Shown piece after piece: positions 10,401-41,315 of a stretch of DNA of 64,000 bases. Within the stretch, counting starts at the first letter, position 1; every line of letters begins with the position of its first letter. Made by a program: the position numbers and the translations under genes. The stretch comes from Heterodontus francisci (Eukaryota), in contig NC_090387.1 in NCBI RefSeq assembly GCF_036365525.1, positions 70,953,535 to 71,017,534 of the forward strand. The letters run 5' to 3'. Under the pieces are notes generated by a model, which worked only from the letters and a program-made list of their open reading frames with translations, was not told where the DNA came from and made no database searches.

Positions 10401-10480
10401 CATAACGCCCGCCTGCTCGTTCACTGTAATAGGTTGAGAAAACCAGAAGCCAGGTACAAATGCCGTGGGTCAGTTAAAAA
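7410..10480. mobile_element. PIF/Harbinger remnant: HARBI1-type DDE transposase (+, ~7410-8300) convergent with a Myb/SANT-like gene (-, ~8550-10296)
   Basis: [35 protein letters not shown] on +. RKAAPR(L/F)S..EILFP..W..VAKEVS..WIQCCKSFN on -. Disrupted by stops. Confidence 0.88.
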
Positions 10481-12579
10481 GCCACCAATAAGCGCACTGC
10501 TGAAACTTCTGAGTTCCCAAAGTGCTGCTGGCCTTTCCCACAGCAAGTAGGTCTGATGGTGTCGAGCTTCTTGAGTGTTGTTGGAGCTGCACCCATCCAG
10601 GTAAGTGGAGAATATTCTATCACACTCCTGACTTGTGCCTTGTAGATGGTGGATTGGCTGAAGTCTGGCATCTGTGATACTGGGGACTTCAGGAGAAGGC
10701 CGAGATGGATCATCAACTCGGCACTTCTGGCTGAAGATTGTTGCAAATGCTTCAGCCTTATCTTTTGCACTGATGTGCTGGGCTCCCCAATCATTGAGGA
10801 TGGGGATATTTATACATCCATTGGGACCTTTAAAGACTGTTGTGGTCTGGCACTCTCATTCATTAGTAGTGATTGTGACATTGCCAGCTTTATAGCTTTT
10901 GCACTGCGTACCTTTAGAAATACAAAGATATTGGGTGTTTTTCTCTCTCTCTCTTTTTCTCAAATGATAGTTGGATCGTGCAAAGTAAGTGAGGAGATCA
11001 CTAAATAATGCAGCACTTTCACCATGTATGGGAAGAAACTCCATGGGTCACCCAACATCTTCCCCATTTTAACTTAAGATCTGAAATTAGGCTGGGACCC
11101 ACCTTACAGGAGGCATTGTGTGAGATGAAGGTTCAGTCCCTAGTCCCAAGACCAGCAGTGGAAGATAGACAGGGACAACTAATGCTTGGAGTTGCCAGAT
11201 CACCAGCTCGGAGTGGGATTATCAGTCCCTTGTGCGGAGGCCACAGCAAGTCTGCATCTGGTGGGAATGGGCCCCAGCTAGGCGTCCAGGCTGGAATCAT
11301 GATGGGGGCCTGGCTTTTGCACTTGTGGCAAGCAGGACAGAGCTACATTTCCTGCCCTGACCTCAAACACTCTGGTGGCGACAAATGCTAAGGCTTCCAG
11401 CAGCCTAGCCTGGGATCCACAGCCCGTGGATATTTGAGTCAATGATCTCATGGGCAGAGATTCTGTCAGATTAGATGGTGATTTAGTTTTTAGCCTTTCT
11501 TCAGTATATTCTACCTCTGGATTTGGTTGCTGAATTAATAATTTGTTTAGTGACTGATCTGTGTACACTTCTTAATGAAATAATGAGATAAATTGAGCAG
11601 ACATGTTACTTACACTTGCTCATCAATTTTCTATGAGGTTTTGCATGGCAAGTTGCTGTTCGGCAAACATCTACATGGCTCAATGCCTTCTACAGAGTGT
11701 CTGGCACCTGCGTGAACAGGGGAAGCAACTGTATGTTTCCTTAACCAGTCAGATAAAAGAATCATTATTGAACAGTGCAGAGTCTGAAACAGGAAGTGGC
11801 AATTAGAATATTAGATTCAAAGTTGAATCAGTACAGAAAGCAAAATAAAGGGGGCAAGAAAGACTGGACTAAGAGAGAGGTAAGAGACAGAAAGAATCAT
11901 TTAAAAGGATTTTTACTTTAATTTTTTTCAATCTCCAACAATAATTAGAAGCTGAAGAAATGAGACTCCATAACTTTAAAATTCATTTAAAGTACCAGGA
12001 AGATTGTTTGGCAATAATAAAGACTTACTATAGTGTTAAAAGGCTACTGAAACTGGAATGGACAAGACTTGCTATTTTGGGTGAATTTAGTCCATATCAA
12101 TGATGTTAGGAGTTTTCTGCCATTCAATTTTTTGGAATGATGTCATGCTCAGAAGGAGCCATGAGAAAATAAACAATGAATTGGAGCAATTATGAAAATA
12201 TGAAAACCTGCTAAACTGAACCACAAGAACATGGACACTTGTGTCACAGACAAAATGGAGTAGTGGTCACATGACCAAGGGTTGGCAACATGTCCTTACA
12301 TGGACACCAGTGTCCATGGTAAACAATTTTGGGGTCTGTGATTGGTAATTTCAAAGATGAGAAATTTCCCATTGTCTTCTTCAGACTGGCTTTTAAAACA
12401 ATTGCAAGTGTTAGTTTCACAGCTGACAGGTGCTGAAGCAAAACAGTGCTTCCGAACTTTGGACAGATTTGTGGTTTTCTGGCGGGCTCTGATTTTTCTT
12501 TAAAAGTTTGCTGGAAAACCTCGAATTTGTGCGAAGATCAAATGTGCTGCTGCCACTTTCAGCAGCAGTCAGAGAGAAA

Positions 12580-12912
12580 GCGGCACAGTGGTGCAGTGGT
12601 TAGCACTGCAGCCTCACAGCTCCAGGGACCCGGGTTCGATTCTGGGTACTGTCTGTGTGGAGTTTGCAAGTTCTCCCTGTGTCTGTGTGGGTTTTCTCCG
12701 GGTGCTCCGGTTTCCTCCCACAGTCCAAAAGACTTGCAGGTTGATAGGTAAATTGGCCATTATAAATTGTTACTAGTTTAAGTAGGTGATAGGGACAGGT
12801 GGGGATGTTTGGTAGGAATATGGGATTAGTGTAGGATTAGTATAAATGGGTGGTTGATGGTCGGCACAGACTCGGTGGGCCGAAGGGCCTGTTTCAGTGC
12901 TGTATCTCTAAT
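12580..12912 (+). mobile_element. tRNA-derived SINE (HE1/V-SINE-like of sharks)
   Basis: A box TGGTGCAGTGG, B box GGTTCGATTC, core TGTGGAGTTTGCAAGTTCTCCC and a LINE-like tail. Confidence 0.88.
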
Positions 12913-13665
12913 CGAAAGAAGGGGAGAGTGGGTGGGGTGGGGAGTGCATAGTGATAGAAAGTATGGGAGAGAGACACAATGGGGGACAGAGAGCGGAGAG
13001 AGAAAGAGTGGGAGAGAGTGTGGGAGAGGAAGACAGTGAGGGGTACAGAGAGAGAGAGTGAGGGTACAGAGAGAGTGGAGGAGAGAGAGTGGGAGAGAGG
13101 GGACAGAGAGAGAGAGACTGGGAAAAGGGCAGACAGAGAGAGAGTGGGGGAAGAGAGAGTGAGGGAAAGAGAGATAGGGGACAGAGAGAGAGAGGGGGGG
13201 GGATAGAGAGAGAGAGAGGTAGGAGGACAGAGAGAGAAAGAGAGGTGGAGAGACAGAGAGAGAAAAGAAGGAACAGAGAGGGCAGGTCTGACACGGTGGT
13301 GGTGGTGGGGAAACAACACAGAGAGGGAACGGACAACACAGGAGGGGGAGACAAAAGGGGGAAGGACAGCATGGGGGGGCACAGAGAGGGGGTGATCAGA
13401 GAGGGAGGCAGAGAGAGAGGGAGGAATAGAGAGGGTGGATCCGACATGGCAGGGGGATTAACATGGGAGAGAAGCAACACAGAGAGAGGATGGAGCAACA
13501 GGGGAGGGTGGGTCAACACAGGGGGCAGACAGCACGGAGAGGGAACAATATGGGGGGACAACATAGAGTGGGGAACAGCACAAAGGGGGAGGGACACAGA
13601 GAGGGGGGCACAGTGTGGGACAGGGAGGGAGAGACACACAGACAGACAGAGGAGGGAGAGAGAGC
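12913..13665. repeat. GA-rich polypurine low-complexity tract
   Basis: (GA)n and GGGG runs giving spurious Glu/Arg/Gly and Leu/Ser/Pro ORFs. Confidence 0.9.
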
Positions 13666-15006
13666 CATCAAGATCACTCCTGATGGATGGAAATATATCT
13701 GGAATACTCCCCATCACCTACACAAGAGTGCAGCCAGGCATTGACTACTTGTGGAAGCAAAGAAATGCCAGGTATGTCACTAAATCAGTGTCCAACATAG
13801 TAACAGGAAGGTAAGTCAATAAATTAGTCTTCTAATTTAAAGCTTCTTCACAATAATACACATTTGTTGTTTTGATTAATAGTAAGATAAATTTTAATGC
13901 CTTTATCTTTCCAAAATTATCTCACCGGTCCCCTATGTAAGACAAAAATGACAATGTGCCCCCCCCCCCCCCACCCCCACCCCCACCATGCAAAAAGGCT
14001 GGACACCCCTGTTCCAAGCCTTGAACCATGTGTTTTAACATAACTTAGCAGCTAAGTTATTTTAAAAGTCAAGTTTAAAGGCCTGTGTTGTGTAAACGCA
14101 TTTTAAAATGGCTAAAGTCACTTAGGGAATGTCTCGATTTCTCTGCTCTGGCACGCATTACTTTCACTTGGGACACAAGCTCAGTAAGATGTTGAAAGTT
14201 ACTGGACTTTACTTCGATATAAATATCATAATTCTGCTGCTATCCATTGGGAATCATATTGTTCCAGAATCTCCAGAAGTCAGCACTGTACGTTCCTTGT
14301 GAATACAAGACTATGGTGTATTGGGGCTGAGTCATATTGGCGAAAACATGATGCTGCTGATCCAAATACAATAGTTAGGAAATCACAGATAGTTTTAATA
14401 AGCTTTAATCTATGATGAACTGTCTATGATTCCTTAACAAAATCCATGCTGCAAAAATTTGCAGTTTTAAAAACTGTCAGAGAAGACATAGTAAAAAGTT
14501 ATTATGTTTCAATGACCATATTAGAAACAGTCATTAACTGCTTTTTTGCTGTGAATTGTATTACAGGACAAGTGTTGCAAGTATGTCAAAGATCAGTAAC
14601 TTCAATGTGCATCATTTACTATCCAGTTTGATGGCAGATAACCTGAGAGGCCAATGTCATTTGAAAGTTGTCTGTATCATATAATTACATTACATTATAA
14701 GTGCACCTTTGCTAATAGGTAAGAGATTTGGCTTGGACATAAATTGGTTAGTCTGGAGTACAATCTTACAGATGGTGACTAAACATTTTGCAATTGAATA
14801 ATACATGCAGTAACAACCGCCCAACCTTTTGCAGAAAAGCTTTTTGTTAGTAACTATCTTGTCAGAGCTGAGTCAGAATCAACAGTGATAGATTACGATA
14901 TAGACATAAATGAATTTAAGAGAATTGCTTCATTAGAGGAACTGAAGGGCGCTCTTTCTTTGTAATTGTGTTTATCTAATTTTGTCACTAGCTTTGGTGA
15001 GCAAAT

Positions 15007-15374
15007 TATAAGGCTGACTACCTTACACGACCCCAATGGGACCCGACGACATGTGTCGGATTTGGGTCGCACTTCCAGGCCCGGCATTCAGGCTCGGCTC
15101 AGGTTGGGCCGGGTCAGATATGCTCTATCACAACCTCAGGTAAGTGGCTCCAATGTTCATTTACTTTTTGGGCTTGAAAGGTGGTTTTGTTACAGTTAAT
15201 TTAAGCTTGTGCAGATAAGCAACAAAGTGAAAAATGGAAGGTAGGTTAACTGATGGTCGGGTCGGGTTGGGCGCGGGAAAAAATGAAAGGACTCGGGCTG
15301 GGTCGGGCTCGGAGCCAGATGTGGTTCTGTCAGGCTTGGGTTGGGTTTCATTTGCAGACCCAAGCCAGCCTTTA
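15007..15374. mobile_element. hAT-like non-autonomous element (MITE)
   Basis: Flanking direct repeat GAGCAAAT (14999-15006 and 15375-15382), imperfect TIRs (..AAGGCTG / CAGCCTT..) and repeated CGGGTCGGG subterminal motifs. Confidence 0.7.
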
Positions 15375-16289
15375 GAGCAAATTACATTTTGTCCATGAGA
15401 GATTTTGTTGTTTCTGTATTTTAGAATCCAGGATCTATTTAACAGCTTGTCAAGATGAATAAACTAGCCTTGGTTACCTACTGTTAATCTTTCAGTCCCT
15501 TCCTGTCCCACTCTGTTTTTCTATTTTACATGACTCTTCTGAAGTACTATCTCCTCCATCCCATAAAATTCTCCTGAGTTGGAATTCACTGCCCTTTTGT
15601 TGGCTGCCCTGTCTTCAGACACATACTACAGCAGGTGGCAAAGCTGCCCAAACATTGGCCATGGGTTAAATTGTCTTGTGACAACAGCATTGTAAGAAAT
15701 AGTCCGTCTTCCTATTGCTGATTTTTCTACTGCCTCACCTCAATAACCACAATAACGATCCTCTCCTTGAGTTTTATGATTTATTGGTTGAATTTGCACA
15801 ACTGACACAGTGTGAATCCACAGAGGTCATCCGATAAGGTCCATCTGCCATGCCGTGACATGGTGTAGATAGCTCTATTCTGTCAACAAAAAGAATTCAC
15901 ATTGGCATTGCATACTATTTTGATTGTTAACTAGCTAATACAGTTGTGCTGCTCTCCATTGATGTTTGTATGCTTAGCTACTTTATTTATCGGGAGAAAT
16001 GTGTTTTAAACAGGACTTTGTTTTGATGGCATTAGGTTGGCTAGACACTTTATATACAGAGTAATTGCTCCCATGTCCGTGGCTGTCAATAATTTTGTCA
16101 AAGATCCGTGGTGCAACATGTCAGTGCCTATCCTTGTACGTGATTCCTCTTGTACTGGTAATACACACCTCTGTTGAGGATGAACCTTATTCACCTCATC
16201 TGAAATAGCTTTGATGAGACCCAATTGAAATTGAAAGGCACACCATTGCATCCTATCTACAAGAATGAACTAACAAAAGGTTTTGGAGA

Positions 16290-17056
16290 AAAACAAGAAA
16301 TGCTGGAAATACTCAGCAGAACTGGCAGCATCTTTGGAGAGAGAAGCAGAGTTAATGTTTCGGGTCAGTGACCCTTCTTCAGAACTGACAAATATTAGAA
16401 ATGTCAAAGGTTATAAGCAAGCAAAGCGGGGGTGGGGCAAGAGATAACAAAGGAGAAGGTGTACATTGGACAAGGCCACAGATTAGCTGACCAGAAGGTC
16501 ATGGAGCAAAGGCAAACAATATGTTAATGGTGTGTTGAAAGACAAAGCATTAGTACAGATAGGGTGTTAACGGACTGCAGATTGAACAGCTGCAAGTACT
16601 AATATGAAAAAACAGTGGGTAAGCAAACTGAACAAACTAAGATGAAATAAAATAAACATGCAAAAAAAATGATAAAAATGTAAAAAAGAAAAATTATCAA
16701 AAAATAAAAGTAAAATGGGGGCCCCGTCATGCTCTGAAATTATTGAACTCAATGTTCACTCCAGCAGGCTGTAATGTGCCGAATTGGTAAATGAGATGCT
16801 GTTCCTCGAGCTTGCGTTGATGTTCACTAGAACACTGCAGCAAGCCCACGATAGAGATGTGAGCATGAGAGCAGGGTGTTGAAATGGCAAGCAACCGGAA
16901 GCTCAGGGTCCTGCTTGCGGACTGAGCGGAGGTGTTCTGCAAAGCGGTCACCCAGTCTGCCTTTGGTCTCCCCAATGTAGAGGAGACCACTTTGTGAGCA
17001 GTGAATACAGTATACTACATTGAAAGAAGTACAAGTAAATCGCTGCTTCACCTGAA
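16290..17056 (-). mobile_element. Penelope-like element 3' part: GIY-YIG endonuclease remnant and terminal repeat
   Basis: FTCTSFNVVYCIHCSQSGLLYIGETKGRLGDRFAEH..PVACHFN, with a hammerhead core at 16351-16385. Confidence 0.9.
16351..16385 (-). ncRNA. Minimal hammerhead ribozyme motif in the Penelope terminus
   Basis: Minus strand reads CTGAAGA-AGGGTCACTGACCC-GAAA, i.e. CUGANGA / stem II / GAAA. Also at 63370-63404 and 41170-41204. Confidence 0.7.
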
Positions 17057-18457: not shown

Positions 18458-18503
18458 ATGTCCAGCTGTATTCCCCTGCTCATCCTGGTAATCGTCTCTA
18501 CTG
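18458..18503 (+). CDS. Exon 1, signal peptide (MSSCIPLLILVIVST)
   Basis: ATG in context caacATG, hydrophobic core, strong donor G|GTGAGT in phase 1. Joins the V exon to give ...VIVSTVTGA-ST, a plausible cleavage site. Confidence 0.85.
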
Positions 18504-21500
18504 GTGAGTCAAGCCGTTTCACCAGAATAGAACCCTTATTCTTTACATAAAGAGCTTTTACGGAAGAATTTTACCCTCATTTGCTTCGCCTCTACTTCTG
18601 TATATTTCCTCTTCTCTGTTTGAAAGATTCCTCCGTTCTCCTGGAGATTTCATTCTCTCTTCATGCTGTCCTGATCATTTAGATGGTCGGAAGGGCGCGA
18701 TGTAAATTTTCGACAATATCAATAATATAAAGACCTGAAATGTTAACTCTGCTTCTCTCTCCACAGATGCTGCCAGACCTGCTGAGTATTTCCAGCATTT
18801 CTTGTTTTTGTTTCAGATTTCCAGCATCTGCAGTATTTTACCTTTTTATATATATATATAAATCTTTAACCTTTGCAGTTCTGATAAAAGATCAATAGCC
18901 TGAAATGTTACTGTTGTTACTGTCAATGCTCTCATTCTCCCTGAGTATTTACAGTTTTTCTGTTGTTTTCGATATAAATGGAATTCTTTCTTTTCTCCAC
19001 AGTTACCGGGGCTTCCACGTTTAAGGTGGGTCAGTACCCGCCTGAACTGAACGAGAGGACGGGTGCCAATGCGACCTTCTACTGCTCCTTCGCGTTTCCG
19101 AAGGATATATCCACTGTCCGAGTGCACTGGTGGAAGGACGCTGAGAAAACCTTCCTCAATGCGAAAAAGGACAGCAGGTATCAGTTTGAAATTCGGAATA
19201 AAGCTAGCGCTGTCTTTCGCCTCCTGAATGTGGATGTCTCGGACTCCGGCACGTATTACTGTAGAGTGGAGATAGCGGGGAAAGCGGGGAAAGGCGCCGG
19301 CACAAGGCTCCAGGTAACCGGTAAGAAATCACATTGAATTTAAAACCCCCCGCTGGAAAGATCCCATGCAGTGGGAGAGATCTGGAAATGTCGCCGCAGC
19401 TCTTCCCGCCATTGGATGCTTGTTATCCTTCTCAATTCTTAGCCATATTACAAGTTAGTGAGAAGGTGATAGATTTAAAGATTTACACTGAAATCACAGA
19501 GCCAGTGCTGACACCAGGCATAGTGGCTCTCATAGGAGGGAATTCAGACTGATAGAGCCGGGATCCGGAGCGGAGATCCACTGGTTTCTGTTATTGAGAC
19601 CAGGATCATTTCACTCCCGGAGTATCGCTGTAAGGAGAAAGAGGGGGAGGGAGTTACAAACGGTGTTACTGCGTTAAATAGACATCTCCTGGGCTAGAAA
19701 ACTCTACAAAAATCGATTACCCGTTGGAGATGGGCTGGTGTCTCTCTACAGTAAAAGAAACCCTGGATTTTATGAAATGTTTGTATAGGGTCCGAGCTCC
19801 GGTTGCCGCTCCTCGGGTCAGTGTGTATTCAATCCCCAGGCCGGTACCTGCAGCTCCCACTGAGCGTTTTAGCCACAGCGGAGAGGACACTTTCTCTGTT
19901 TTAGGGTGAAAGCTGGCCCGGCTGAACTATCCCGTGCAATGTCCACAGTTTTTTCCCCTTCAATTCTTACCCGCTTTCGCTATTAATTCACCTATTTTCA
20001 AATATTGCCAGTCAGTTTGTAATTATTTGTACCCGAGCATCAACGGATTCTCCCGCCCCTTCCCACACACTCCCCATTCCCTGATTTATATTTAATATTT
20101 AGACACCCAGTGTGTTTGCTCTCCTCCCCAGCTGATCACCAAACATTCAGGCAAAATGCACAAACTAAATCAAAATCAATTTTCAAAATCTCGAACGAAA
20201 AACTCAATCAACAAAAGTGAATAAATCTGCGAGCGTCTGTTAGGATTTTTTAAAAATAACTGCAGTTTGAAAATGATATTATGGTATATATTAAAATTCC
20301 TCTATCGATTATTTAACGGATGAATTAACTCATGTGTTTTATGTTATAATATCCCAATAATTAATAGTTTTAATAAGTGCACCCGTTTGTAATATTCCAC
20401 CAACACTTGGCGCCGTTTATATTCAATTCCTCTCGGTCATGTTACCGGAGTTAGCAACTTGTTTTCTGATACAGCGAATGAAGTTTGAGCCCCGCTTTTC
20501 CCTCCATTAATCTGTCAAGAGCGTTGCTCCTAATTTTGATAAAAGCAAAATACTGCGGATGCTGGAAATCTGAAATAAAAACAAGAAATGCTGGAAATAC
20601 TCAGCAGGTCTGGCAGCGTCTGTGGAAAGAGAAGCAGAGTTAACGTTTCTTCGGAACTGCCGAAGAAGGGTCACTGACCTGAAACGTTAACTCTGCTTCT
20701 CTTTCCACAGACGCTGCCAGACCTGCTGGGTGGTTCCAGCATTTCTTGCTCCTAATTTTGAACTGGATTTAATGTCAATGCAATCGGAAACATTCCCAGA
20801 ATATTAAATGAAATTAATTGTCTCAGCAAGTACAGGAAGAAATAATTCGCGTCTCATTGGATGGAAAGATCCAACTCTTTTCTGCAAGCAGTTAGTCTCA
20901 TTCGCAGTTCCAGGTGTTGAAATCTGGTGTTGAGCATTAGTTAGTATTCGCGCCGCCTCTGCGAGGGAAGACAATTAATCTTCAAATACTTTTAACATGA
21001 TCACTGGCATAAGGGAATGAGGATCTGAATCCATCTTTCATGTGGCAATGTGTGTCTGTATATTTGGACATTTGAGCTGCATTTTTCATCCCCCGGATTA
21101 CTACCTATGCACAGCTCACACAAGGAGTTGCGCGTTTACTGCCTCCGTTTCTCTCGGAATTTCTTGCCTCACTTTGGAAATACATCCGACCAACCCTGCT
21201 TTGTTTAGTAGAGAATAAAAGGTATTTTCGCTATCTGGCTATTAAACTACGAAAAAAGCAGGGTATATTACTGGCTGGACTGTGCTTTACCCTTTCCCCA
21301 AAGAGCAGAAAATCGTCAGTTTTATAATACTTTGAAATTATTCATGACGTTTTTGAGTTTTGATGTAAGATTTAATCAGCAACTAGAGTCTGGGCGTGCT
21401 CCTTACTGCTACTGAGGGCTTGAAATCTAACAGTGTAGCTTGAATAAGCAATGGGGTTTATTACTAAAAACAGAGAGCAGACTGGTGAATGATTTAAACT

Positions 21501-24500
21501 GTTACATTACTGGCACGAACCCACTTGTAAAATGTATTCAACCTGTTAATTGTATCCCATATCCCACACGCGTTAGACCAGTCCAGACTTTGAAATCATT
21601 GTGGGATTATTGAGAATTTCTCAAATTCCTTCTGCTATTTTAGTAACAGAACTTGCATTTCTGTAGCGCTCGCTGCATGTAAAGAAAAGTTTCAAGACTC
21701 TTTGCGGAGCACCGGTCAAAGAGAGGGAATGAGAAAACCAAAGATAGAGGAGGCATTTGAAGGCGAGGATGAATTGATAAAATGTTGTAGGTGCCGGAGA
21801 GAGAGGTCCGGGGGGATGAAAGGGTGATCACTGATGAGGCATCGACCAACAGGGAGCAGGTTACAGGGAGCAGGTTAGAGTTTGACCAGTTGTGTCTGTG
21901 TGTGAGGAGGGTGCATCAGCGAAATGGGATGGGGGAGGCAACTAAGGAATTTGAAGGCAAGGATGAGGATCTTAAACTCAATGAGTTTAGTAAGGGGAGT
22001 CAGGAGAGCTGGACAGGGGTTGAGTGCTGGATACGAGGGTGGGGAAGCAGGTTGACATGTTGTGGACAGTGCATTGGGGAAACTGTGCCTCGAGGCGGTG
22101 ATGTTAACCAGGCTTTGGCAAGAGAGGGGGAGAAACTGGGACAAGAAGCGTGGAGAGTTTGAGCTGTAATAATGGTCATTCGGATGTTGGGTACAAGACT
22201 GAGTCTGGATTTGAGCAGTACACCAAGAATCCACATTTCGAGACTTGATCCGAGGCCGCTGGACAGTTTGATGATATGTAGGGGTTTATAAAAAGTGAAG
22301 ATAGCTTCTTCAGTTTTAGTGGCATTTAGTTGGAGGTAACTTTGACAGATCCATATCTAAAGATCAGAAAGCCATCTGCAGAAACGGTGACACCTTTGAT
22401 GACAAGAGAAGCGATAGAGAGATAGAGCAGAGCATCATCGGTGTCCATGTTGATGTAACAAAAGGATTCCATATGAATGAAGGTAAAGATACCAAGCATG
22501 TAGCATAGGGATATACAGCAGTGACTGCGCCGACATGCGAATAGACGCGACTGGTGACAATATAATCTGAATGAAGTAACAAGTAGGATTGGAATCCTGT
22601 GAGAACAATGTTATAGATATAGACACTGTTAGGGAGTGGTGCAGTTAATAGTGTTGAAGACAATGGGGAGGTTGCGGGACAGCAACTCCGACCAGTATGG
22701 TTTATGTTGTCGAAGCCTGGATGCAGGGTCTCTGGCTGGGAATGATGGAAGAGATGGCAGTGGAAATGGCAATGATGCGTCTCAGAGAGAAAAGACAAGT
22801 TGGTGATGGGGGAAGTTAGAGAAAATGACAGGGTCAAGAAAGGCACAAATAAATCTAGTTGCTTCTAAGCAATGGAAAACCTGCCAAAATAGTAAAGGAA
22901 GGTAGTTCAGAAGAAGATGCCAAGAATTCATTCACTGGAATCCCACAGTCGGTTTGGAGATTGGTTAACTGTTTAAGCGCCGTTTCGGGGAATGGAGGGA
23001 CGGGGGTCCTCGTTACCGGTGCCACATCTGTCCCTCGGGATCCTTCTCTGCCTCAACAACCGATCACATCAGAGTAAAATAGGAAATTAATTACAACAAT
23101 TTGAGTTAGCATTCATTTATTACACACACCGCATTGGAGCTGATTTTAAAGCAAACCATACAATGTGTGCCCACAAACAGGAAGAACCTAATACCAGTGT
23201 TCAATAACACCCAACAGGGACTTGCATATGAAATAAATACACAGTGTAAATACATATAAAAACATGAAGCCCACTAAACCCATTCTTTCCACAGGTTAGT
23301 ACCCCAGTGAGCGCTTCTCTGTCCTAAACCTCGTCACTGTTTCAGCATGAACTCCCTTCTCATGTATAGAAACCTGTCACTGATCCTGCTCAGAAGGGGA
23401 TAAAGGGGAGTTTATATAGAAACAGCAAAATTAATATACTGGGTATGAACTCCCATATTATTCAGAGTTAAATATCATTCTCGTCCCTTCACGTTCAGCA
23501 GTTCTGATGGATCGGGAGGTAAATTGACTGAGTCCAACAGTTCAACAATAACACAAAGCGTTTGTTCAAGAACAGGAAAGGATGGGGTGGGTGAGGACAG
23601 GATGAGGTGTTGCTCCCCATCTCCACTGGAACCGGGTGTCCAGCCAGCCATCCCATAGGAACAGGAGGAGGACATTTAGCCCATGGACTCTGTTCCGCCA
23701 TTCAATGAGATCATGGCTGAACTGCCACCTAACACCATATACCCACCTTTGCCCCATATCCTTTAATACCTCTGGCTAACAGAAGTCTATCAATCTCAGA
23801 TTTAAAATTTACAGTTGATCTCACATCTATTGCTATTTGCGGAAGAGAGTTCCAAATTTCTACCACCCTTTGTGTGTAGAAGTGTTTCCTAATTTCACTC
23901 CTGAAAGTTCTTGCTCTAAATTTTAGACTATGCCCCCTAGATCTAGAATTCCCAACCAGCGGGAATAGTTTCTCTCGAGCTCCCCTATCTGTTCCCATTA
24001 ATATCTTGAAAACTTTGATCATCCGGGAACAGGCTATTTTCGATCTAGTAATGTGTAATGAGGTAGGATTAATAAGAGATATCGTAGTTAAGGATCCTCT
24101 TGGGGGTAGCAATCACAACATGCTAGAATTTCAAATTCAGTTTGAGGGTGAGCAACTCGGGTCTTAAACCAGTGTCCTCAACTTAAACAAGGGCAATTAC
24201 AGAGGTATGAAGAAAGAGTTGTCCTAAGCGGTCTGGGAAAATATACTAAGGAGAAGGTCAGTGAATGAGCAGTGGAAGACATTTAAGCAGATATTTCATA
24301 ACGCTCAGCAAAAATTTATCCAGGTCAAAAAGAAGGACTCAATGAGAAGGATGAACCACCCATGAGTAACAAAGGCAGTCGAGGAGAGTATCCAATCAAA
24401 AGCTAAAGTATACAAAGTGGCGTAAACTGGTGGTAGGCCAGAGGATTGGGAATTTTTTAGGAACCAGCAGCGGATGACTAAAAAGCTAAGAAAGAGGGAG

Positions 24501-27500
24501 AAAATTGATTATGAAAATAAATTGGCAAGAAATATAAAAAAGTAAACAGTAAGAGCTTCTATGGGTATTTAAAAAGAGAGACAGTAGCTAAAGTAAATGT
24601 GGGACCCTTGGAGGATGTGACTGGAGAATTGATAACGGGGAAATGGGAAATGGCAGATCATTTAAACCAATATTTTGCATCGGTCTTCACGGTGGAGGAC
24701 AGTCTCTATCATGAGGGACAAAGTATTTGATAAACTAATGGGACTAAAGGCAGACAAATCACCAGGACCTGATGGCCTACATCCAAGGATTTGAAAGGAA
24801 GTAGCTGCAGAGATAGTGGAGGCATTGGTCGAAATATTCCAGAACTCACTGGATTCCAGGAGGGTCCCAGCGGATTGGAAAACCGGTAATGTGACGCCCA
24901 TGTTCAAGAAGGGAGGGAGACTAAAAGCAGGAACCTATAGGTCAGTCAGCCTAACATAGGTCGTTGGGAAAATGCTAGAGTCCATTATTAAGGAATAAAT
25001 AACAGGACATTTAGAAAAGCTAAACAAAATATAACAGAGTCAACATGGTTTTGTGAAAGGCAAATCATATTTGACAAATTTGCTAGAGTTTGTTGAGGAT
25101 ATAACTAGCAGAGTTGATAAAGGGGAACTGGTAGATGTAGTGTATTTGGATTTCCAGAAGGCATTCGATAAGGTGCCACATAAAGGATTATTGCACAAGA
25201 TAGGAGCTCATGGCATTGGGGGTAATGTATTATTATGGATTGAGGATTGGTTAACTCACAGAACACAGAGAGTCGGGATTAATGGGTCTTTTTCAGGTTG
25301 GAAAGATATAACTAGTGGAGTGCCACAAGGATCAGTCCTAGGGCCTCAATTATTTACTATCTATATTAATGACTTGAAGGAGGGGACAGAGTGTAATATA
25401 TCCACATTTGCTGATGATACAAAAATAGGTGGGAGGGCATGTTGTGATGAGGACATAAGGAATCTGCAAGGGGATATAGATAGGTTGAGTGAGTGAGTGG
25501 GCAAAAACCTGGCAGATGGAGTTTAATGTAGGAAAATGTGAGGTCATGCACTTTGGTACGAAGAATCAAAAGACAGACTACTATTTAAATGGATAGAAAC
25601 TCCAAAAAAAGTGCAGCACAGAGGGATCTGGGCGTTCTTGTGCATGAAACACAAAAAGTTAGCATGTAGGTGCAGCAAGTCATTAAGAAGGCAAATGGAA
25701 TTTTGGCCTTTATTGCTAGGGGATTGGAGTTTAAAAATAAGGAAGTCTTGTTACAACTGTACAGGGTGTTGGTGAGGCCGCACTGGAGTACTGTGTACAG
25801 TTTTGGTACCCAAATTTAAGAAAGGATACAATGGCATTGGAGGCAGTTCAAAAGAGAGTCTCTAAGCTGATTCCTGGGATTAAGGGGATGACTTATCAAG
25901 AATAGTTAAATATGTTAGGCCTTTATTCATTCGAGTTTAGAAGAATAAGGGGTGATCTTATTGAAACGTACAAGATTCTGAGGGGGCTTGAGAGAGTAGA
26001 TGTTGAGAAGATGTTTCTACTAGTGGGGGAATCTCAAACTAGGGGACATAGTTACAGAATAAAGGGACACTCATTTAAAACTAAGATGCGAAGGAATTTC
26101 TTCTCTCAGAGGGCAGTGAATGTTTGAAATTCTCTACCCCAGAGAGTTGTGGAGGCTAAATCACTGAAAGTATTTCAAAGAGGAGGTAGATTTTTGAAAT
26201 ATTGGGGCATTGAGGGCTATGAGGAGCTGGCACGAAAGAGGAGTTGAGTTCTGGGGCAGATTAGCCATGATCTTATTGAATGGCGGGGCAGGCTTGAGGG
26301 GCTGAATGGCCTACTCCTCCTCCTATTTTGTATGTTCTTATGTTGTTTAACCTTCTAAACTCAAGGGGATACAATCCTAGTTTGTGTAATCACTCCTTGT
26401 AATTTAATATTTGGAGTGCCGGTATCATTCTAGTAAACCTATGTCACACTCCCTCCAAGGACAATAAATCCTTCCAAAGGTGTGGTGCCCAGAACTGCTC
26501 ACAATACTCCCGATCTGGTCTAACCAGGGCTTTGTATAGCTGAAGCTTGATGTCTACCCCTTTGTATTCTCGTCCTCTAGATATATAAGTTCCACTTATA
26601 TCGATACATAAGATATATTATGTTCTTATGTTCTAAGGCCAGGATTCCATTAGCCTTTTTGATTATTTTCTGTACCTGTTCATGACATTTTAATGATCTA
26701 TGTACCTGACCTCCCAAATCTCCTTTGACCTCCACTGTTTCTAGCTTTTCACTATTTAGAAAGTACCCTGTTCCATTCTTTTAGCCAAAGTGGATGATCT
26801 CACAGTTGCCTCCACTGAAATCCATTTGCCATAGTTTTGCCCATTCACAATTTATTAATATCTCTTTATAATTTTATACTTTACACTGCTTACAATGCTG
26901 TCTATTTTGTACCATGGACAAATTTGGATGTGTGGCTTTCTATCTCATCATCTAAGTCCTTAATAAATACAGTGAATAGTTGAGGCACCAACAGAAATCT
27001 TTGGGGACACCACGAGTCCCAGCCTGCCAATTAAAGTACCTGTTTATTATTCTTGTTCTTTGTCTCCTGCTCCTCAGCTAATTTCCTCACCAGGTCAATC
27101 ATTTGCCTTCACTTCCATGAGTTTCAACTTTAGCTAACAGTCTCTTCACCATTCAAGAGCTGGCTATCCATTAACATTTTTCCCGATATTATTCAGTTGA
27201 ATTATAACCAAGTCTGGACACAAGGTGTGTGGTTAATGTAAGATTTAGATTAGTGAAATTAACCAGAGTAATTCTCAATGGATCTGCACTTCTTCATTGT
27301 GTGTCTGTGTGTATATATATATATATGTATATACGCGTGTAGTTTATCTTCACCAAAATCATCGTCACCAAAATCATCATCCCCACAAGTGTCTTTTTCA
27401 ACATTTCACCGGCGGTAAACGTAACAAATTCGGTAAAAATTTACGCATTGAAATAAATATTGACAACCGCGCGTCAGAATGAAAGCTGCACAAATCTTGA

Positions 27501-30500
27501 TTTTTATCCTGGATCAGTGCTGGGATTCTCAGGGTTGTAAAAACAACAAATGATTCCAGCTGAACCAGGAAACTTCCTTTGTCCCAGTTTCCAAACAGGA
27601 ATTTCAGAGCGATTCCCCCGTCGTAACTTCGGCGGAAAGCCGGCAGAAACGGCTCTGACTTAGACGTTTCGGGTCAGTGACCCTTCTTCGGAAGGGTCAC
27701 TGACCCGAAACGTTAACTCTGCTTCTCTTTCCACAGATGCTGCCAGACCTGCTGAGTGAATCCAGCATTTCTTGTTTTTGTTTCAGATTTCCAGCATCCG
27801 CAGTATTTTGCTTTTATATGACTTAGACGTCCCGTGCAAACCCTTCACAAGTAAACACAATATTCCAAATGTAAACTAGGGTCGGGAGAAAATACAATTA
27901 AATAGGATCGAGAAATAGTTGAATTCGAAAAGGATAGATTGAATGAATATTGCAGTGTAAAATAGTTTCGATAAAATGACTAGATCTAGAACTGAATACA
28001 ATCGGATTCATTTCCATTGGAAACTGGCATCAGAATAATATGAGATTTCTCTCGTCTGTCCCACAGCTCACCCCGATTCTCCGCTGATTGTTCCCACTCT
28101 GTTTCGAAAAGACTCGGCGGTTTTCCTCAAACTTGCCTGTAACATTGGCGGCGTTCACTCCAAGGATCTGAGTGTGAACTGGTTTGTGAACGGCATCGAG
28201 ACAGTAACTGGAATCCGCAAAGATCTTCAGCCACGGTCAGGCGGCCTCTTCCAGATCTCCAGCTATTTGGAGGAATCGCAGCCTGCTCAGAATGGGACAG
28301 TTTATACCTGTCGGGTCTCCTACCCAGACAGACAAGTTCAAACCCTTTACACCTACATTTCTGGTGCTGAAGGTACGGTCATTTTAACAGATTCTTAAAG
28401 GTTGCTCGAGACTTGTAGATTTAGTCTGATGTGCACAAGATCTATGGCATTGAATTGATGTCCCTGGATGACAATTTAAGACACGCTGGGTGGGAATAGC
28501 TGATGGTTTACTGCTGTTTTGTTCGTGGTAACGGAGGCGAGACGTTCAGATCCAGTCTTGGTATTTAAATAATGCAATAATAAAGTGAAACCATAGCGGA
28601 TCTTTTGGGTCACTCCCGCCTTAGTAACAATGGACGCGACTGACACGAGTTTTCAACTGGCCTCCAGTTTCGAGGTGGTGAGAATCATGGAGGGGAGCGA
28701 TGCCTTCCACCTGGAATACAATGCCTGGAAACCCCGGTAGTGAAATAATAACTTTCAAAAGGGAACTAGGTATAAATTTGAAAAGGAAACCTATCCAGGG
28801 CTTACAGGGAAAGAGCAGGGGAATGGGACTAACCGAATAACCATCTCAAAGGAACGATGGGCCGAATAGCTTCCTCCTGTGCTGTTTGATTTTATAATAT
28901 CCCCTTATCAATGGCGTTTCTCTCCGAGTGGAAGCAGCTAATGGCAAACTTCTGGGATAATGACTTTGAGCATAGAGAATTGGGAGAGGTAGATAGCACT
29001 AGAGTAGGAATTAGTAAAGTATTAGGTTGGGTCAGAGTAAGAGGGAAAGTGATAAAGTCTAAATGACGGTTACTGTGCACACATGTGAGTACACAGTGTG
29101 TGGTAAATAAGGTTGCTGAGTTACAGGCGCAGATATCCACATGGAAGTATGATGGTGCGGGAATAATGGAGACCTGACTCAAAGAAGGACAGGACTGGCT
29201 ACTAAATATTTCCGGATACAAGGTGTTCAGGAAAGATAGGAAAGGGAGAGGGGTGGCAGTATTGATTAAGGAGAGCATTGCAGTGCTAGAGAGAGAGGAT
29301 ATCCCAGAAAGGTTGAGGACAGAATCCATTTGGCTGGAGCTGAGGAACTAAAAAGGTGCAATTACATTGCTCGGTGTAGTCTGTAGGCCACCAACTAGTG
29401 GGAAAGATGTAGAGGAACAAATTTGCAAAAAAATTAAAGAGAGGTGCAAGAATTATAGAGTAGTTATAATGAAGGACTTTAATCATCCGAATATAAACTG
29501 GGATAGCAGTAGTGTTTTTTTTTATATTCATTCATGGGATGTGGACATCACTGGCTAGGCCAGCATTTATTGCCCATCCCTAATTGCCCTTGAGAATGTG
29601 GTGGTGAGCTTCCTTCTTGAACCGCTGCAGTCCATGTGGGGTAGGTACACCTACAGTGCTGTTAGGAAGGGAGTTCCAGGATTTTGACCCAATGACAGTG
29701 AAGGAACAGCGATATAATTCCAAGTCAGGATGGTGTGCGGCTTGGAGAAGAGCTTTCAGGGCAGAGAGAAGCGAGAGTTCCTAGAGGGTGTTCAGGAGAA
29801 TTTTCTACAGCAGTTTTTTTTTTTCCTTTCCAGTCCAAAGAGAAAGAAGGCACTGCTAGACCTGGTCCTTGGGAATGAGGTGGGCCATGTGGATCAAGTG
29901 TCAGTAGGGGAACATTTAGGGGACAGTGATCGTTGTATCATAAGGTTTAGGTTGGCTATGGAAAAGGACAAGCAACAATCCAGAGTAAGAATAATTAACT
30001 GGGGGAAAGATAACTTCAATGGGGTAAGAATGGATCTGACCCAGATAAATTCGAACCAAAGTTTGGCAAGCAAAATGGGAACTGAACAATGGGCTGCCTT
30101 TAAAGAAGAGATAGTTCAGGCATAATCAAGGTATATTCTCAAGAAGGGGAAAGGTCGGGCAAACAACTCCAGAGCTCCCTGGATGACAGAAGAGATAGAG
30201 ATTAGGATGAAGAAAATGTGTGCATAAGACAGGTGGCACAGTGGCGGCACAGTGGCGCAGTGGTTAGCACCGCAGACTCACAGCTCCAGTGACCCAGGTT
30301 CAATTCTGGGTACTGCCTGAGTGGAGTTTGCAAGTTCTCCCTGTGTCTGCGTGGGTTTCCTCCGGGTGCTCTGGTTTCCTCCCACATGCCAAAAGACTTG
30401 CAGGTTGATAGGTAAATTGGCCATTATAAATTGCCCCTAGTATAGGTAGGTGGTAGGGAAATATAGGGACAGGTGGAGATGTGGTAGGAATATGGAATTA

Positions 30501-33500
30501 GTGTAGGATTAGCAAAGAAATATTTTATCAAATGCCTGCTCACAAAGTTAAGGTAGCAATATTTTTTAATTTCAGAAAATTCCTGTCAGTGTAATGCAGA
30601 AATTAAAGTAGAATCTGTTCAATTTTAAATGTCGTTGACAACTTGTAGCAGGAGCTGAGCAGCAACAGTGAGATTGAGTGCAGGTCTGTAACAGAGAAGT
30701 GCTGGCAGTAACAGTGAGATTCTCCAGTCCAGGTCTGTCACAGAGAAGGATCAACAGCAAAGGTGAGATCCTCCAGTCCATCAATAAGAGGGAGTGTGGG
30801 TCTGTCAAAGAGAAGGGTAGGTTTTTGCAGTGAATGAGGGCATGGCTAGAATAGGAGAGAATAGAGAAGGTAAATTGAAACATTTCTCCTCTACACATTG
30901 CCCCATTATTTCTCTGGCTTAATTTTACAAAAATGCATGTATATTTCTAACCAGCATTATTTGCAACCACTATGTTTACTAACCAGGATGTGGTATTGTC
31001 AGATTAAATCACATTGTTACTGTGTATATCAGTGTTTAAATTTAAGTGTTGAAAGGTGCATGTGTTGTATTGTTCACACATTTCCTGTGCTGTGATATAA
31101 CAATTACATTGAGACATGTATTTGCATTTGAGATGTTGCAGAGCAAGAATCAGATCTTCTACCCTGGTGGATCTATATCTGTATTGGGAGTGGAGCTTTC
31201 CTCCTGCTGCTCCTGGTTACATCAATACTTTGTAAATTCTGTGTATGCAGAGGTAAGCATGCCATATTTTGTTAAACAGTTTAAATTTAGAATGTTCAAT
31301 ATACTTTATATAAACACAAGTTACAATGAACTGAAGTGATATTGTAAGTGAATTATATTTGTCTGAAGTAACTTTACTCATGGATTTAAAGAATAAGTTC
31401 AGTGAACACTGAGAAGAGCTTCGTAACAATGGGGAAGTTGATACTCTTCTGTGGTGAATAATATAGTATTTATCGTACATCACCATACAAACTCTTCAGT
31501 TACTTGTTTGATATGTGAATGGAGTAAATCTTGAAGAATCTCAGTTTTTGCAAGAGAGGAAAAATATTGGATCACCGCCACAAATATTTACACCGTGTAT
31601 TGCATCAACTATCCTATTATTACATATTCCACAGTGGAGCCTAGCTCTGTCCCATTTCTGGTAGATATGATAGAAAAGAGTGGTATGTATAAATAATGCA
31701 AGCAAAGTTATGTTGTGCTGGCTGGGAGTTCTGGCGTTTCCTTGCGAGTCTACATATAAGATTGTGGTAACTCTCCATAATTTCAAGTGTTTATGTCATA
31801 TTAGATTTTCTAAAGGGTAGTTTAAAACCGTATAGGCTGGACTTTATCAATAGCAAAGACTTAAAAGTAACCTTATTATTTATCCAAGCTATAGCTTTCC
31901 CCCTGGCTAAAGGTTGACCAGCCCCACAACATCTAAAGCCCATAAACTATATTAGCTCATAACCTCGATAAGGGATACTATATTCCTAGATATTGGGGAT
32001 CACTCTAACCACCTGCACAATCTAGATATTAGGGATCTCACTTACCTACCCTCACAATCTAGCTATTGGGGATCACTCTTGTCCACCAATACAATCTAGA
32101 TATTGGGGATCACTCTTGTCCACCATCATAATCTAGATGTTGGGGATCACTCTCACCTACCCTCACGATCTAGATATTGGGGATCACTCTCATCTACCCT
32201 TATGATCTAGATATTGGGATCATTCTCATCCACACTCACCATCTAGATTTGGTGGAATCACTCTCACCTATCCTCATGGTCTAGATATTGGGAATCAATC
32301 TCGTCCACATTCACGATCTAGATATTGGGGGTCACCCTCACCTCCCTCACGATCTAGATATTGGGGATCACCCTCACCTCCCTCACGATCTAGATATTGG
32401 GGATCACCCTCACCTACCCTCACGATCCAGATATTAGGGATCAGTCTCATCTACCCTCCTGATCTACATTTTGGGGTTCACTCTCATCTACCCTCCTGAT
32501 CTAGATATTAGGGATCACTCTCGTCTACCCTCTTGATCTAGATACTGGGAATCACTCTCGTCCACACACAATCTAGACGTTGGGGATCACTCTCATCTAC
32601 CCTCATGATCTAGATATTAGGGATCACGCTCGTCCACTCTCTTGGTCTAGATATTGGGGATCACTCTCACCTACCCTCACAATCTAGATATTGGGGATCA
32701 TGCTCGTCTACCCTCATGATCTAGATTAAAAATCAACTAGTTATGTCGAAGCTAATTTGAAAGGTAAACAAGCAAGGCAAGTTAGTAAGTAACTAAATCT
32801 AGTTACATTAATTCATAACTGAGACCATTTTCTTTCACCAATTTCTGCAACTGACTACTGAAGACTCATTTAATTGGCAACTGATATTAGTCAGATTGTT
32901 CTGAACTGACGTGTAGATTTGATTTCTGGTGAGCAGGCAATGATTGACAGTGAAAAATTCTGGTTATATTTAATAGGCGTCCTGCTTGAAAATTGAAATA
33001 TTTGATTTGCTCAAGCATTCGGATCTATGAAATGATATGAAGTATATGGCAGTGTCATTTACATTCATAATGGGGTTCTATTAGATTATGCAATTGAGAT
33101 ATTTCCATTAATTGGTTTAGCTCAAACACAATGGTACATTGAAAGGCAATCTGCTGCTCGACCCATCCCTATCTTCAAGAGAATTTGTTTAAGGTCATAT
33201 TATTTACTATAAATTTATTCTCTGCTAGGCAAACGGAGAAGAGCAGAGAAGATAAATGTTCAAGAACAACAGGTAACTTGTTTATAATCCTTTTTATCAG
33301 CTGCTGTGAAATTTCTTTAAAATATGTTTTATGAAGACTGAAATGTCCTAACTACGGACAACAGTGAAAAGAGAATTAAGGCTATGCAGCAAAGGTTTTC
33401 CACAGCAATTTTCTTTGGACATTCCACCCTGGATCATAGACAAAATTAGAATACTTAGAAATTGTTGTGTTCCCTCTGTTATCTTGAAGGATTGTCTAAT

Positions 33501-34253
33501 GACTTTTATATATATATTTATATTTATTCCTTCTCCTGGAAGTACTAACTCATGCTGGAATACAGTGCTGTAGACTGGGTTCCCTGTGGTACCTCGTTGA
33601 AGTGACACTAACATGTACAAACCTGAACAGTATGCCTCCAATTATAAGCAGCGGGTGCTGGAATCATTGTGCACAAACACCAAAGCAGGCGACGCACTCG
33701 ACAACAATGGAGCTGTCGAGGCCCAGTCAAATTTAACGTGCGGGCCTCATTTCATCAAATTTCATTGGAGTCTCGCCCTAACACAGCCAGATCTGCTACC
33801 TGGCTGGTGGACAGGAGCAGTAAGTAGGAGGGGGCAGGAGATGCAATTGGGTACTCGTGGAAAATTGCACTGGTAGTCAGGTAAATAGTGGGGAGAGTGA
33901 ATGCCTGGGGCAAGCAAGGTGGGGCACAGAGGGATTTTGATGCTGTCAAAAGTCAATATCTTGTCAATCTCTTTTGTACTATTGTCTTGCAGCATATGCA
34001 GCAACCAGCTAATTACAAGATGGCATATACTGCTGTGGATTTCAGCAACCTTGAAAAAGACACAAAGCACCAGCACATGAATAAGAGACCAGCATGCTCC
34101 CACATGCCACCAAGAAACCAGCAGAGACATGACAAGGTTATTTATGCAACACCGCAACTCAAACAGCACCAGGGCAGAAAGATGGGCCCGCTGTCCACTG
34201 AACCCAAGAACAACAAATCAGTTACGAGCAAGAAGTTTGTTCTCCAATCTTAG
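18458..34253 (+). CDS. Spliced IgSF type I membrane receptor: leader + germline-joined VJ domain (NKp30/NCR3-like) + C1-like domain + TM + ITIM-like tail. join(18458..18503,19003..19320,28067..28372,31142..31252,[31635..31682 optional],33229..33272,33993..34253)
   Basis: All introns are GT-AG with compatible phases (1,1,1,1,[1],0). The joined frame is open: 1086 nt = 361 aa + stop (377 aa with the optional exon). One domain per exon, as is typical of IgSF genes. Confidence 0.88.
18730..18960 (+). mobile_element. Penelope-terminus remnants in intron 1
   Basis: CTGAAATGTTAACTCTGC...CCAGCATCTGCAGTATTTT, followed by a more decayed second copy. Confidence 0.75.
19003..19320 (+). CDS. Exon 2, Ig V domain with an in-exon J-like segment
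   Basis: Acceptor ttcttttctccacAG and donor G|GTAAGA. Motifs: VGQYPP, ATFYCSF (B-strand Cys), VHWWK (C-strand Trp), DSGTYYC (F strand), GAGTRLQV (J-type G strand). Confidence 0.95.
20540..20745. mobile_element. Short Penelope-terminus insertion in inverted arrangement, with target-site duplication
   Basis: TTGCTCCTAATTTTGA at 20524-20539 and 20746-20761 flanks a ~65-bp inverted repeat. Confidence 0.85.
21648..22850 (-). mobile_element. Old L2-type LINE 3' remnant
   Basis: Minus-strand tail resembling ..GCGCTACAGAAATGCAAGTT, and an IEFKILILAFK motif. Confidence 0.6.
24023..26343 (+). mobile_element. CR1 LINE ORF2 (endonuclease end and RT) with 3' tail, nested in an older minus-strand CR1 (~23660-27150)
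   Basis: YLDFQKAFDKVPH, SGVPQGSVLGPQLF, FADDTK, RGDLIETYKI. Minus-strand CR1 pieces lie on both sides. Confidence 0.92.
27668..27818 (+). mobile_element. Short Penelope-terminus insertion with a 5' fold-back and target-site duplication
   Basis: TGACTTAGACGT at 27656-27667 and 27819-27830, with a perfect 23-bp hairpin at 27664-27713. Confidence 0.85.
28067..28372 (+). CDS. Exon 3, Ig C1-like domain
   Basis: Acceptor ctgtcccacAG and donor G|GTACGG. Translation AHPDSPLIVP...LKLACNIGGVHSKDLSVNWFVNG...GGLFQISSYLEE...GTVYTCRVSYP... has C1-set Cys-Trp-Cys spacing. Confidence 0.9.
28960..30225 (+). mobile_element. CR1 LINE endonuclease-region remnant
   Basis: GVVCRPP, DFNHPNINW, LLDLVLGNE, HLGDSD. 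A different LINE 3' end interrupts it at ~29515-29750. Confidence 0.85.
30244..30512 (+). mobile_element. tRNA-derived SINE, 3'-truncated
   Basis: Same head and core as 12580-12912. Confidence 0.85.
31142..31252 (+). CDS. Exon 4, connecting peptide and transmembrane segment (EQESDLLPWWIYICIGSGAFLLLLLVTSILCKFCVCR)
   Basis: Acceptor ttgcAG and donor G|GTAAGC, phase 1-1, about 22 hydrophobic residues with no charge. This reading frame is not in the ORF track. Confidence 0.88.
31635..31682 (+). CDS. Candidate optional cytoplasmic mini-exon (VEPSSVPFLVDMIEKS)
   Basis: Acceptor attccacAG and donor G|GTATGT. 48 nt, symmetric phase 1-1, and only the required frame is open. Confidence 0.5.
31985..32725. 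repeat. Intronic ~36-37-bp minisatellite, about 20 units
   Basis: Repeating TCTAGATATTGGGGATCACTCTCACCTACCCTCACGA. Confidence 0.92.
33229..33272 (+). CDS. Cytoplasmic exon (GKRRRAEKINVQEQQ)
   Basis: Acceptor ttctctgctAG and donor CAG|GTAACT, phase 1 to 0. Polybasic stretch typical of a juxtamembrane region. Confidence 0.82.
33993..34253 (+). CDS. Terminal cytoplasmic exon with tyrosine motifs MAYTAV and VIYATP
   Basis: Acceptor ttgtcttgcAG, phase 0, open to the TAG ending at 34253 (3' part of ORF 33888..34253). Confidence 0.85.
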   Translation, partial: HMQQPANYKMAYTAVDFSNLEKDTKHQHMNKRPACSHMPPRNQQRHDKVIYATPQLKQHQGRKMGPLSTEPKNNKSVTSKKFVLQS

Positions 34254-41038: not shown

Positions 41039-41119
41039 ACTTCAACATTCCTTTTCTATTCATATCAGTTATGTTAATCATTCCTGTATGATTATCTGAA
41101 CTTGGATTATTTATAATAA

Positions 41120-41315
41120 TGTTGGAAATACTCAGCAGGTCTGGCAGCATCTGTGGAGAGAGAAGCAGAGTTAACGTTTCAGATCAGTGACCCTTCTTCA
41201 GAACTTTCAGTTAAGTCCTCTTCTCTCTCCACAGATGCTGTCAGACCTGCTGAGTATTTCCAGCATTTCGTTTTTATTTCAGATTTCCAGCATCCACAGT
41301 ATTTTGCTTTTATTA
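41120..41315. mobile_element. Inverted pair of Penelope termini
   Basis: Same terminal sequence as 20540-20745, present in both orientations. Confidence 0.8.

Follow-up and report, generated by a model that had tools for sequence, protein, structure and literature searches.

Introduction

Mammalian NKp30 (NCR3) consists of a single immunoglobulin (Ig) V domain, a transmembrane (TM) segment with an arginine and a short cytoplasmic tail, and the TM arginine serves for pairing with CD3-zeta or FcR-gamma. Nurse shark NCR3 genes were reportedly described by Kinlein et al. in 2021. Chicken PRARP, which Fu et al. are said to have described in 2019, is reportedly a non-rearranging membrane protein of the Ig superfamily with joined V and J segments (VJ), a single V domain, a tyrosine motif in the tail and no C1 domain. 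Eight nurse shark NCR3 genes (MT914154-61) are cited in PMC12227049, and the supplement to PMC10751288 lists genes labelled NCR3 in class III of the major histocompatibility complex (MHC), five in white shark, between AIF1 and DDAH2, and one in catshark. UrIg is secreted and has several C domains and no TM segment, UrIg2 has 9-11 C domains, and both are disulfide-linked homodimers (PMC12227049). The SIRPs are regarded as tetrapod-specific (PMC13262535). Here we analyzed a horn shark (Heterodontus francisci) gene at positions 18458-34253 of a 64,000-nucleotide stretch of contig NC_090387.1 (positions 70,953,535 to 71,017,534, forward strand), hereafter the window. We consider it likely that the gene is one of two tandem H. 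francisci copies encoding a germline-encoded type I membrane glycoprotein, and that it belongs to a conserved elasmobranch orthogroup within a chondrichthyan family of non-rearranging VJ-C1 genes that are NCR3/NKp30-like and SIRP-like.

The gene shares with the shark NCR3 family a non-rearranging VJ-type V domain, membership in a chondrichthyan multigene family and a gene span in the range of 11-21 kb. Unlike mammalian NKp30, which has no C1 domain, the horn shark protein combines a C1 domain with an uncharged TM segment and a tail of 100 amino acids (aa). Like UrIg and UrIg2, the gene has a split leader, VJ in one exon, no recombination signal sequence (RSS) and a constant domain of the C1 type, and like UrIg it has evolved conservatively across elasmobranchs. 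On the other hand, it has one C1 domain where UrIg and UrIg2 have three or more, and it has a TM segment and a signaling tail but no stalk cysteine. Compared by description only, PRARP shares the VJ joining and the tail tyrosine with the horn shark gene but lacks its C1 domain.

Gene structure, RefSeq identity and tandem duplication

The stretch was confirmed to hold a genuine horn shark gene that is present in RefSeq. The gene lies on the + strand and has six exons with canonical AG/GT signals at every border; exons 1 to 4 each end in phase 1, the usual phase in genes of the Ig superfamily, exon 5 restores phase 0, and the coding sequence sums to 1083 nt, or 361 aa. The exons are listed below with the residues that each contributes to the RefSeq protein.

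18458-18503, + strand: exon 1, codons 1-15 from the ATG and 1 nt of codon 16, split leader MSSCIPLLILVIVST, donor CTG/gtgagt (residues 1-15)
19003-19320, + strand: exon 2, end of the leader and germline-joined VJ-type V domain, Pfam V-set 38.8 bits (residues 17-121)
28067-28372, + strand: exon 3, single C1-set Ig domain by Pfam (LACN...WFVNG...YTCRVSY), with an NGT site (residues 123-223)
31142-31252, + strand: exon 4, short stalk, TM helix LLPWWIYICIGSGAFLLLLLVTSIL and juxtamembrane cysteine cluster CKFCVCR, AlphaFold2 (AF2) helix 232-274 (residues 225-260)
33229-33272, + strand: exon 5, 44-nt cytoplasmic exon GKRRRAEKINVQEQQ that returns the frame to phase 0 (residues 262-275)
33993-34253, + strand: exon 6, remainder of the tail with NYKMAYTAVDF, SHMPPR and KVIYATPQL, stop codon TAG (residues 276-361; A1 conservation)

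The six exon peptides were found letter-for-letter and contiguous in XP_067905726.1 (P0168, isoform X2, "uncharacterized protein", 361 aa), an agreement far beyond chance. The initial annotation had proposed a phase-compatible 361-aa type I membrane protein composed of leader, VJ, C1, TM and cytoplasmic parts from "six (or seven)" exons. All exons had been placed correctly and the product is identical to XP_067905726.1; six exons suffice and a seventh is unneeded. For exon 5, only two candidates are open and flanked by good splice signals; they share the donor at 33272, and the shorter one alone leaves phase 0. Its peptide corresponds to the segment GKGRKAEERRVQENQ of the orthologues.

RefSeq holds three isoforms of the gene (XP_067905725 to 727), and 9-nt tandem acceptors are the sole difference among them. 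In isoform X1 (364 aa) the stalk gains DVA through an acceptor at 31133, 9 nt upstream of the exon 4 start. In isoform X3 an acceptor at 34002, 9 nt inside exon 6, drops QHM from the tail. As a rule, the NCBI pipeline releases such isoforms only where transcripts support them, and by that practice the three isoforms imply that the horn shark gene has such support. Extra stalk residues (AFA) were also seen in orectolobiform orthologues, and the lamniform and carcharhiniform orthologues are without them. Neither an Ig octamer nor a TATA box was found in the 750 bp upstream of the gene.

Self-comparison of the window by megablast revealed a large repeat that flanks the gene.

3229-17029, repeated at 48955-64000, strand not assigned: upstream flank repeat unit, 91-99.6% identity, offset 45.6-47.9 kb

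A second RefSeq gene on the same chromosome (P0169/P0171) differs from the present one at six residues. Three of these lie in the BC and FG loops of the V domain, two near the start of the C1 exon in the A-strand region and one in the tail. Because the flank is repeated and the chromosome carries this second, near-identical RefSeq gene, we conclude that the gene lies in a tandem unit of ~46-48 kb, and copy 2 should begin ~1.4 kb beyond the end of the window.

The V domain is germline-joined and only broadly NKp30-like

The V exon is in phase 1 at both ends. Its peptide contains Cys27 and Cys86 and one NAT glycosylation site. The leader is split between the first 46 nt in exon 1 and three codons in exon 2. 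A J-like G strand, GKGAGTRLQV, lies inside exon 2 with the splice donor directly 3' of it, and there is no F or W ahead of the GxG. A scan of positions 18900-19700 found no CAC[AT]GTG heptamer, no nonamer and no 12/23 pattern. The exon thus shows the combination expected of a germline-joined VJ segment, namely GxGTxLxV, a split leader and no RSS. These results uphold the earlier claims that the V exon already carries its own J-like strand (GAGTRLQV), with no RSS in or after it, and that the gene does not rearrange, VJ being fused in the germline. In this the gene differs from rearranging Ig light chain (IgL) and T-cell receptor (TCR) loci, in which V is flanked by RSS and J and C are separate; the horn shark gene has no separate J or C cluster, and its V domain lacks a C'' strand.

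The AF2 model of the V domain had a predicted local distance difference test (pLDDT) score of 93, and in this short domain the C' and C'' strands are absent. When the model was compared with solved structures, the nearest V domains were those of CD79b, NKp30, shark IgNAR, TCR and PD-1. Foldseek placed CD79b first and NKp30 second (E 3.8e-9, template-modeling score [TM-score] 0.81, 28% identity). VIA-align gave a Z score of 13.5 for NKp30 (29% identity) and placed the IgNAR V domain at the top with 14.7, with neighbors within ~1 Z unit of each other and many ties. By phmmer, NKp30 was matched with an E value of ~6e-4, no better than TCR-alpha or IgL, and NKp30 was absent among the nearest named Atlas clusters. 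The likeness to NKp30 claimed in the initial annotation is therefore real and a fair one, but it does not appear to be specific, given the second rank in Foldseek, the ties in VIA-align and the modest phmmer value; the domain is about as close to IgNAR V, CD79b and TCR V.

The second domain is a C1 domain and the ectodomain resembles an Ig light chain

The C exon alone matched the Pfam C1-set (PF07654) with 40 bits, and the whole protein matched it with 46.8 bits, where the curated cut-off is 21 bits. Neither C2-set nor I-set matched the exon in Pfam. C1-set was matched in all 13 orthologues searched, and C2-set_2 was matched weakly in one of the 13. The best matches of the exon in the PDB were the CH2 and CH3 domains of IgG. 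In the AF2 model the domain has strands at residues 128-136, 139-151, 157-162, 171-178, 182-190, 200-206 and 213-219 and a 3-residue bridge, and it shows the seven-strand A-B-E-D / C-F-G topology of a C1 domain, including the D strand. The F-strand motif YxCxVxH occurs as YTCRVSH in several orthologues and as YTCRVSY in horn shark. Thus, the second domain is C1 rather than C2 or I-set, as had been proposed.

Taken together, the two domains form an ectodomain that AF2 modeled with a pLDDT of ~90. The best Foldseek matches over both domains were antibody light chains. The orthogroup profile also aligned in one piece over V and C1 with IgL (8e-14), SIRP-alpha (4.5e-12), SIRP-gamma (4e-11) and TCR-beta (3e-10). 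The two-domain V-C1 ectodomain is hence shared with Ig light chains and TCR, which give the best matches by profile and by structure; unlike them, the horn shark protein has a long tail of its own. The description of a cartilaginous-fish receptor with a TCR- or light-chain-like ectodomain was borne out, with SIRP to be added to the list of likenesses. No further Ig exon was detected in the window by tblastn, and the RefSeq model likewise has one C1 domain. A weak tblastn match at 40996-41172 had been considered as a second V exon and was rejected as a SINE-like repeat (short interspersed element) rather than an Ig exon.

The TM segment is uncharged and the tail has tyrosine and proline motifs but no canonical ITIM

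Charged residues are absent from the TM segment (LLPWWIYICIGSGAFLLLLLVTSIL), in support of the initial annotation, and the segment contains a PWWIY motif. The CKFCVCR cluster that follows it is a probable palmitoylation site. The cytoplasmic tail is ~100 aa long. We scanned the tails of orthogroup A, the set of elasmobranch orthologues described below, for the immunoreceptor tyrosine-based inhibitory motif (ITIM; (S/I/V/L)xYxx(I/V/L)) and the immunoreceptor tyrosine-based switch motif (ITSM; TxYxx(V/I)). This regular-expression scan found no canonical ITIM or ITSM in 22 rows from 13 species. The tails of two ray orthologues, read by eye, also lacked both motifs. The earlier assignment of an inhibitory-type tail thus found no support.

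The tail nevertheless has conserved features, and the TM segment and tail are conserved to the same degree as the ectodomain. A tyrosine near the C terminus lies in an invariant [VI]YA[TSA]PQ of the YxxP type (VIYATP in horn shark, with Pro at +3). A proline motif, PxxPxR, is conserved as CPHVPPR in most species and as SHMPPR in horn shark. KMAYTA[VIM]D occurs in sharks only, the skate and the rays having lost it; MAYTAV has Met at -2, and it fits the Csk-type pattern Y[TAS]x[MIV]. From these motifs the tail appears to be a tyrosine and proline signaling tail that could act with either polarity. A Pfam match of the TM segment and tail to the SIT adaptor was rejected as compositional, with 21.5 bits against a cut-off of 27.6 and a match in only 3 of 13 orthologues.

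The gene belongs to a conserved elasmobranch orthogroup within a large chondrichthyan family

We searched the V exon against 1.84 billion representatives and carried out follow-up searches. Protein searches that used the V region or the orthogroup profile as query returned chondrichthyan relatives only, and they revealed a large V-C1-TM family of which every member looked up was chondrichthyan. The names given by NCBI vary and include PTPNS1 (SIRP-alpha)-like, SIRP-gamma- or SIRP-beta-like, NCR3-like, NCR3 ligand 1-like, Ig lambda-like, TCR-beta-like and tapasin-related-like. The initial annotation had suggested that the family was possibly undescribed, which does not hold, since the gene has a RefSeq model, its orthologues are annotated and genes of the shark NCR3 family and of VJ-C1 type have been published. 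The horn shark gene is an uncharacterized member of a known shark family and not a new kind of gene.

Orthogroup A was found in 15 elasmobranch species and is tight, with one gene per species in those named here. The members are as follows.

Sharks: Heptranchias, Cetorhinus, Carcharodon, Scyliorhinus canicula, S. torazame, Rhincodon, Stegostoma, Hemiscyllium, Chiloscyllium plagiosum and C. punctatum
Batoids: the skate Leucoraja and the rays Mobula and Hypanus

Identity to the horn shark protein over its whole length was 58-68% in sharks, ~50% in the skate and ~40% in the rays. The clade had a support of 100 in the Shimodaira-Hasegawa-like approximate likelihood ratio test (SH-aLRT), and its branching order was near the species tree. 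The sister group is a second elasmobranch group that shares the PWWIY motif in the TM segment and whose tail is rich in lysine and free of tyrosine. Canonical ITIMs (LTYAAL, VTYAAL, TEYAEI and similar) occur in other subfamilies, and the tails of the chimaera paralogues are SIRP-like (VTYAALDL...TEYAEIQ). Yet others combine a very short tail with an Asp, Glu or His in the TM segment (P0078, P0046, P0050, P0097, P0167). Judged by these sequences, the charged-TM, short-tail members would supply the activating side that a paired-receptor family is expected to have, and together with the ITIM-bearing members they give the predicted make-up of a classical family of that type. In every species with data, one chromosome carries both the orthologue and its paralogues.

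A mosaic-like paralogue, P0192 ("NCR3 ligand 1-like isoform X2"), was found in H. francisci on the same 99.65-Mb chromosome, outside the window. Its leader and V domain are of the type of the present gene (76% identity), and the V tree joined it with the two horn shark copies (SH-aLRT 97). On the other hand, its C1 domain, TM segment and tail belong to another subfamily with the canonical ITIMs LTYAAL and AVYAEV, with a support of 98 in the C1 tree. P0192 is either the product of a V-exon transfer that gave a receptor pair sharing one V domain or a chimeric gene model.

Function and alternative explanations

For a germline-encoded VJ-C1 glycoprotein of this kind, we propose that the tip of the V domain would bind a cell-surface ligand and that the C1 domain would serve as a stalk. 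Signaling would proceed through the tyrosine of [VI]YA[TSA]PQ, through PxxPxR and, in sharks, through MAYTAV, and the partners of the tail may be SH2/SH3 adaptors or kinases instead of a classical ITIM-SHP switch. One point weighs against this account as a receptor of defined function: because the tail contains no canonical ITIM, ITSM or immunoreceptor tyrosine-based activation motif (ITAM), the direction of the signal is a guess. The orthogroup has evolved conservatively, unlike the ITIM-bearing and charged-TM paralogues that share its chromosome and evolve fast; this conservation points to a ligand that is fixed and probably self. Which gene the RAG (recombination-activating gene) transposon invaded is a question that can be studied in living species through non-rearranging VJ-C1 genes, and a conserved, membrane-bound member with a single C1 domain and its own signaling tail is a data point to be set beside UrIg, UrIg2, NCR3 and SIRP. 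The gene was already annotated and its family already known, and the current picture is unchanged.

A more far-reaching form of this account would treat orthogroup A as a distinct and ancient VJ-C1 lineage, not linked to the MHC and separate from NCR3 proper, SIRP and UrIg. For over 250 million years each elasmobranch genome would have retained a single, conservatively evolving copy, the tail would signal by a route other than an ITIM (YxxP, PxxPxR and the Csk-type YTAV of sharks), and the V exon of the horn shark gene would have been copied onto the ITIM-bearing P0192. As a whole we regard this as tentative and rather unlikely to be right in every part. If it were true, P0192 and the present gene would form a receptor pair that binds the same ligand and signals differently.

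A true shark orthologue of NCR3 (NKp30), encoded in MHC class III and binding B7-H6, with the C1 domain and the long tail as primordial features lost in mammals, was also considered and appears very unlikely. NKp30 had the highest TM-score and identity (27-29%) among the structural neighbors of the V model, some family members are named NCR3-like by NCBI, and PMC10751288, in its supplement, places several shark genes labelled NCR3 between AIF1 and DDAH2. However, CD79b, IgNAR V, PD-1 and TCR V are level with NKp30 in their likeness to the V domain. In addition, the TM arginine, the single-domain ectodomain and the short tail of NKp30 are all missing from the horn shark gene. The window itself contains no flanking gene by which to place the locus. 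The orthologues LOC121279610 (white shark) and LOC119970979 (catshark) are on chromosomes of 193.5 and 198.8 Mb, and their gene IDs fall outside the ranges found on the MHC chromosomes NC_054485.1 and NC_052158.1. Because of these gene IDs, the orthogroup is probably not the MHC-linked NCR3, a placement that is derived from gene IDs and chromosomes rather than from mapped positions; the present gene's orthologues thus appear, unlike the shark NCR3 genes, to lie on a non-MHC chromosome.

There is a still slimmer chance that the pre-RAG ancestor of the antigen receptors survives here in a lineage of its own, as with UrIg and UrIg2, with a VJ-C1 unit that dimerizes in the manner of TCR and Ig. 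The layout of a split leader, VJ in one exon and C1 is the same as in UrIg and UrIg2 (PMC12227049), the V-C1 unit aligned in one piece with IgL and TCR-beta, and the orthogroup shares the conservative evolution noted above. Against this, the stalk has no cysteine for an interchain bond, the single C1 domain compares with three or more in UrIg and UrIg2, UrIg itself has no TM segment, and the nearest relatives of the gene are ordinary members of a paired-receptor-type family.

Least probable of all, and in our view scarcely credible, is that the gene is the SIRP-alpha (PTPNS1) orthologue of cartilaginous fish, which would recognize a CD47-like ligand and inhibit through SHP-1/2: the V domain with a J-like G strand is followed directly by a C1-set domain as in SIRP, both are type I with a tyrosine-bearing tail, both families include paired forms, some with ITIMs and some with a charge in the TM segment, many members are named PTPNS1-like or SIRP-gamma-like, the profile matched domains 1-2 of SIRP-alpha, the nearest named Atlas clusters include SIRP-alpha (0.96) and the chimaera tails are SIRP-like, but the V-C1-C1 ectodomain of SIRP is replaced here by V and a single C1 exon, the tails of the orthogroup have no ITIM or ITSM, IgL outscored SIRP in the profile search and according to a 2026 survey the SIRP family arose in tetrapods (PMC13262535). 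The possibility that the gene is the one-to-one orthologue of an already characterized gene such as a SIRP had been named at the outset as fatal to the proposal, and no such orthology emerged, the gene being no SIRP and probably not NCR3 proper.

Repeats in and around the gene

The introns are crowded with retroelement debris, for example a reverse-transcriptase (RT) open reading frame (ORF) at 25053-25496. Intron 4 contains a tandem array at 31986-32726 with a period of ~36 nt and ~80% identity among the copies, which gives rise to the repetitive ORF HLPHDLDIGDHP. In the duplicated flanks, long low-complexity, GC-skewed pseudo-ORFs were found on both strands at 6028-7023 and 51641-52890 and at 12894-13814 and 60527-61687. 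Their translations are Pro/Ser/Leu-rich or Gly/Arg-rich, and they are simple-sequence arrays and not genes. Both flank copies also carry pol fragments of retroviral or long-terminal-repeat retrotransposon type (2184-4444 and 48985-50057), with integrase, RNase H and RT-like ORFs on the - strand.

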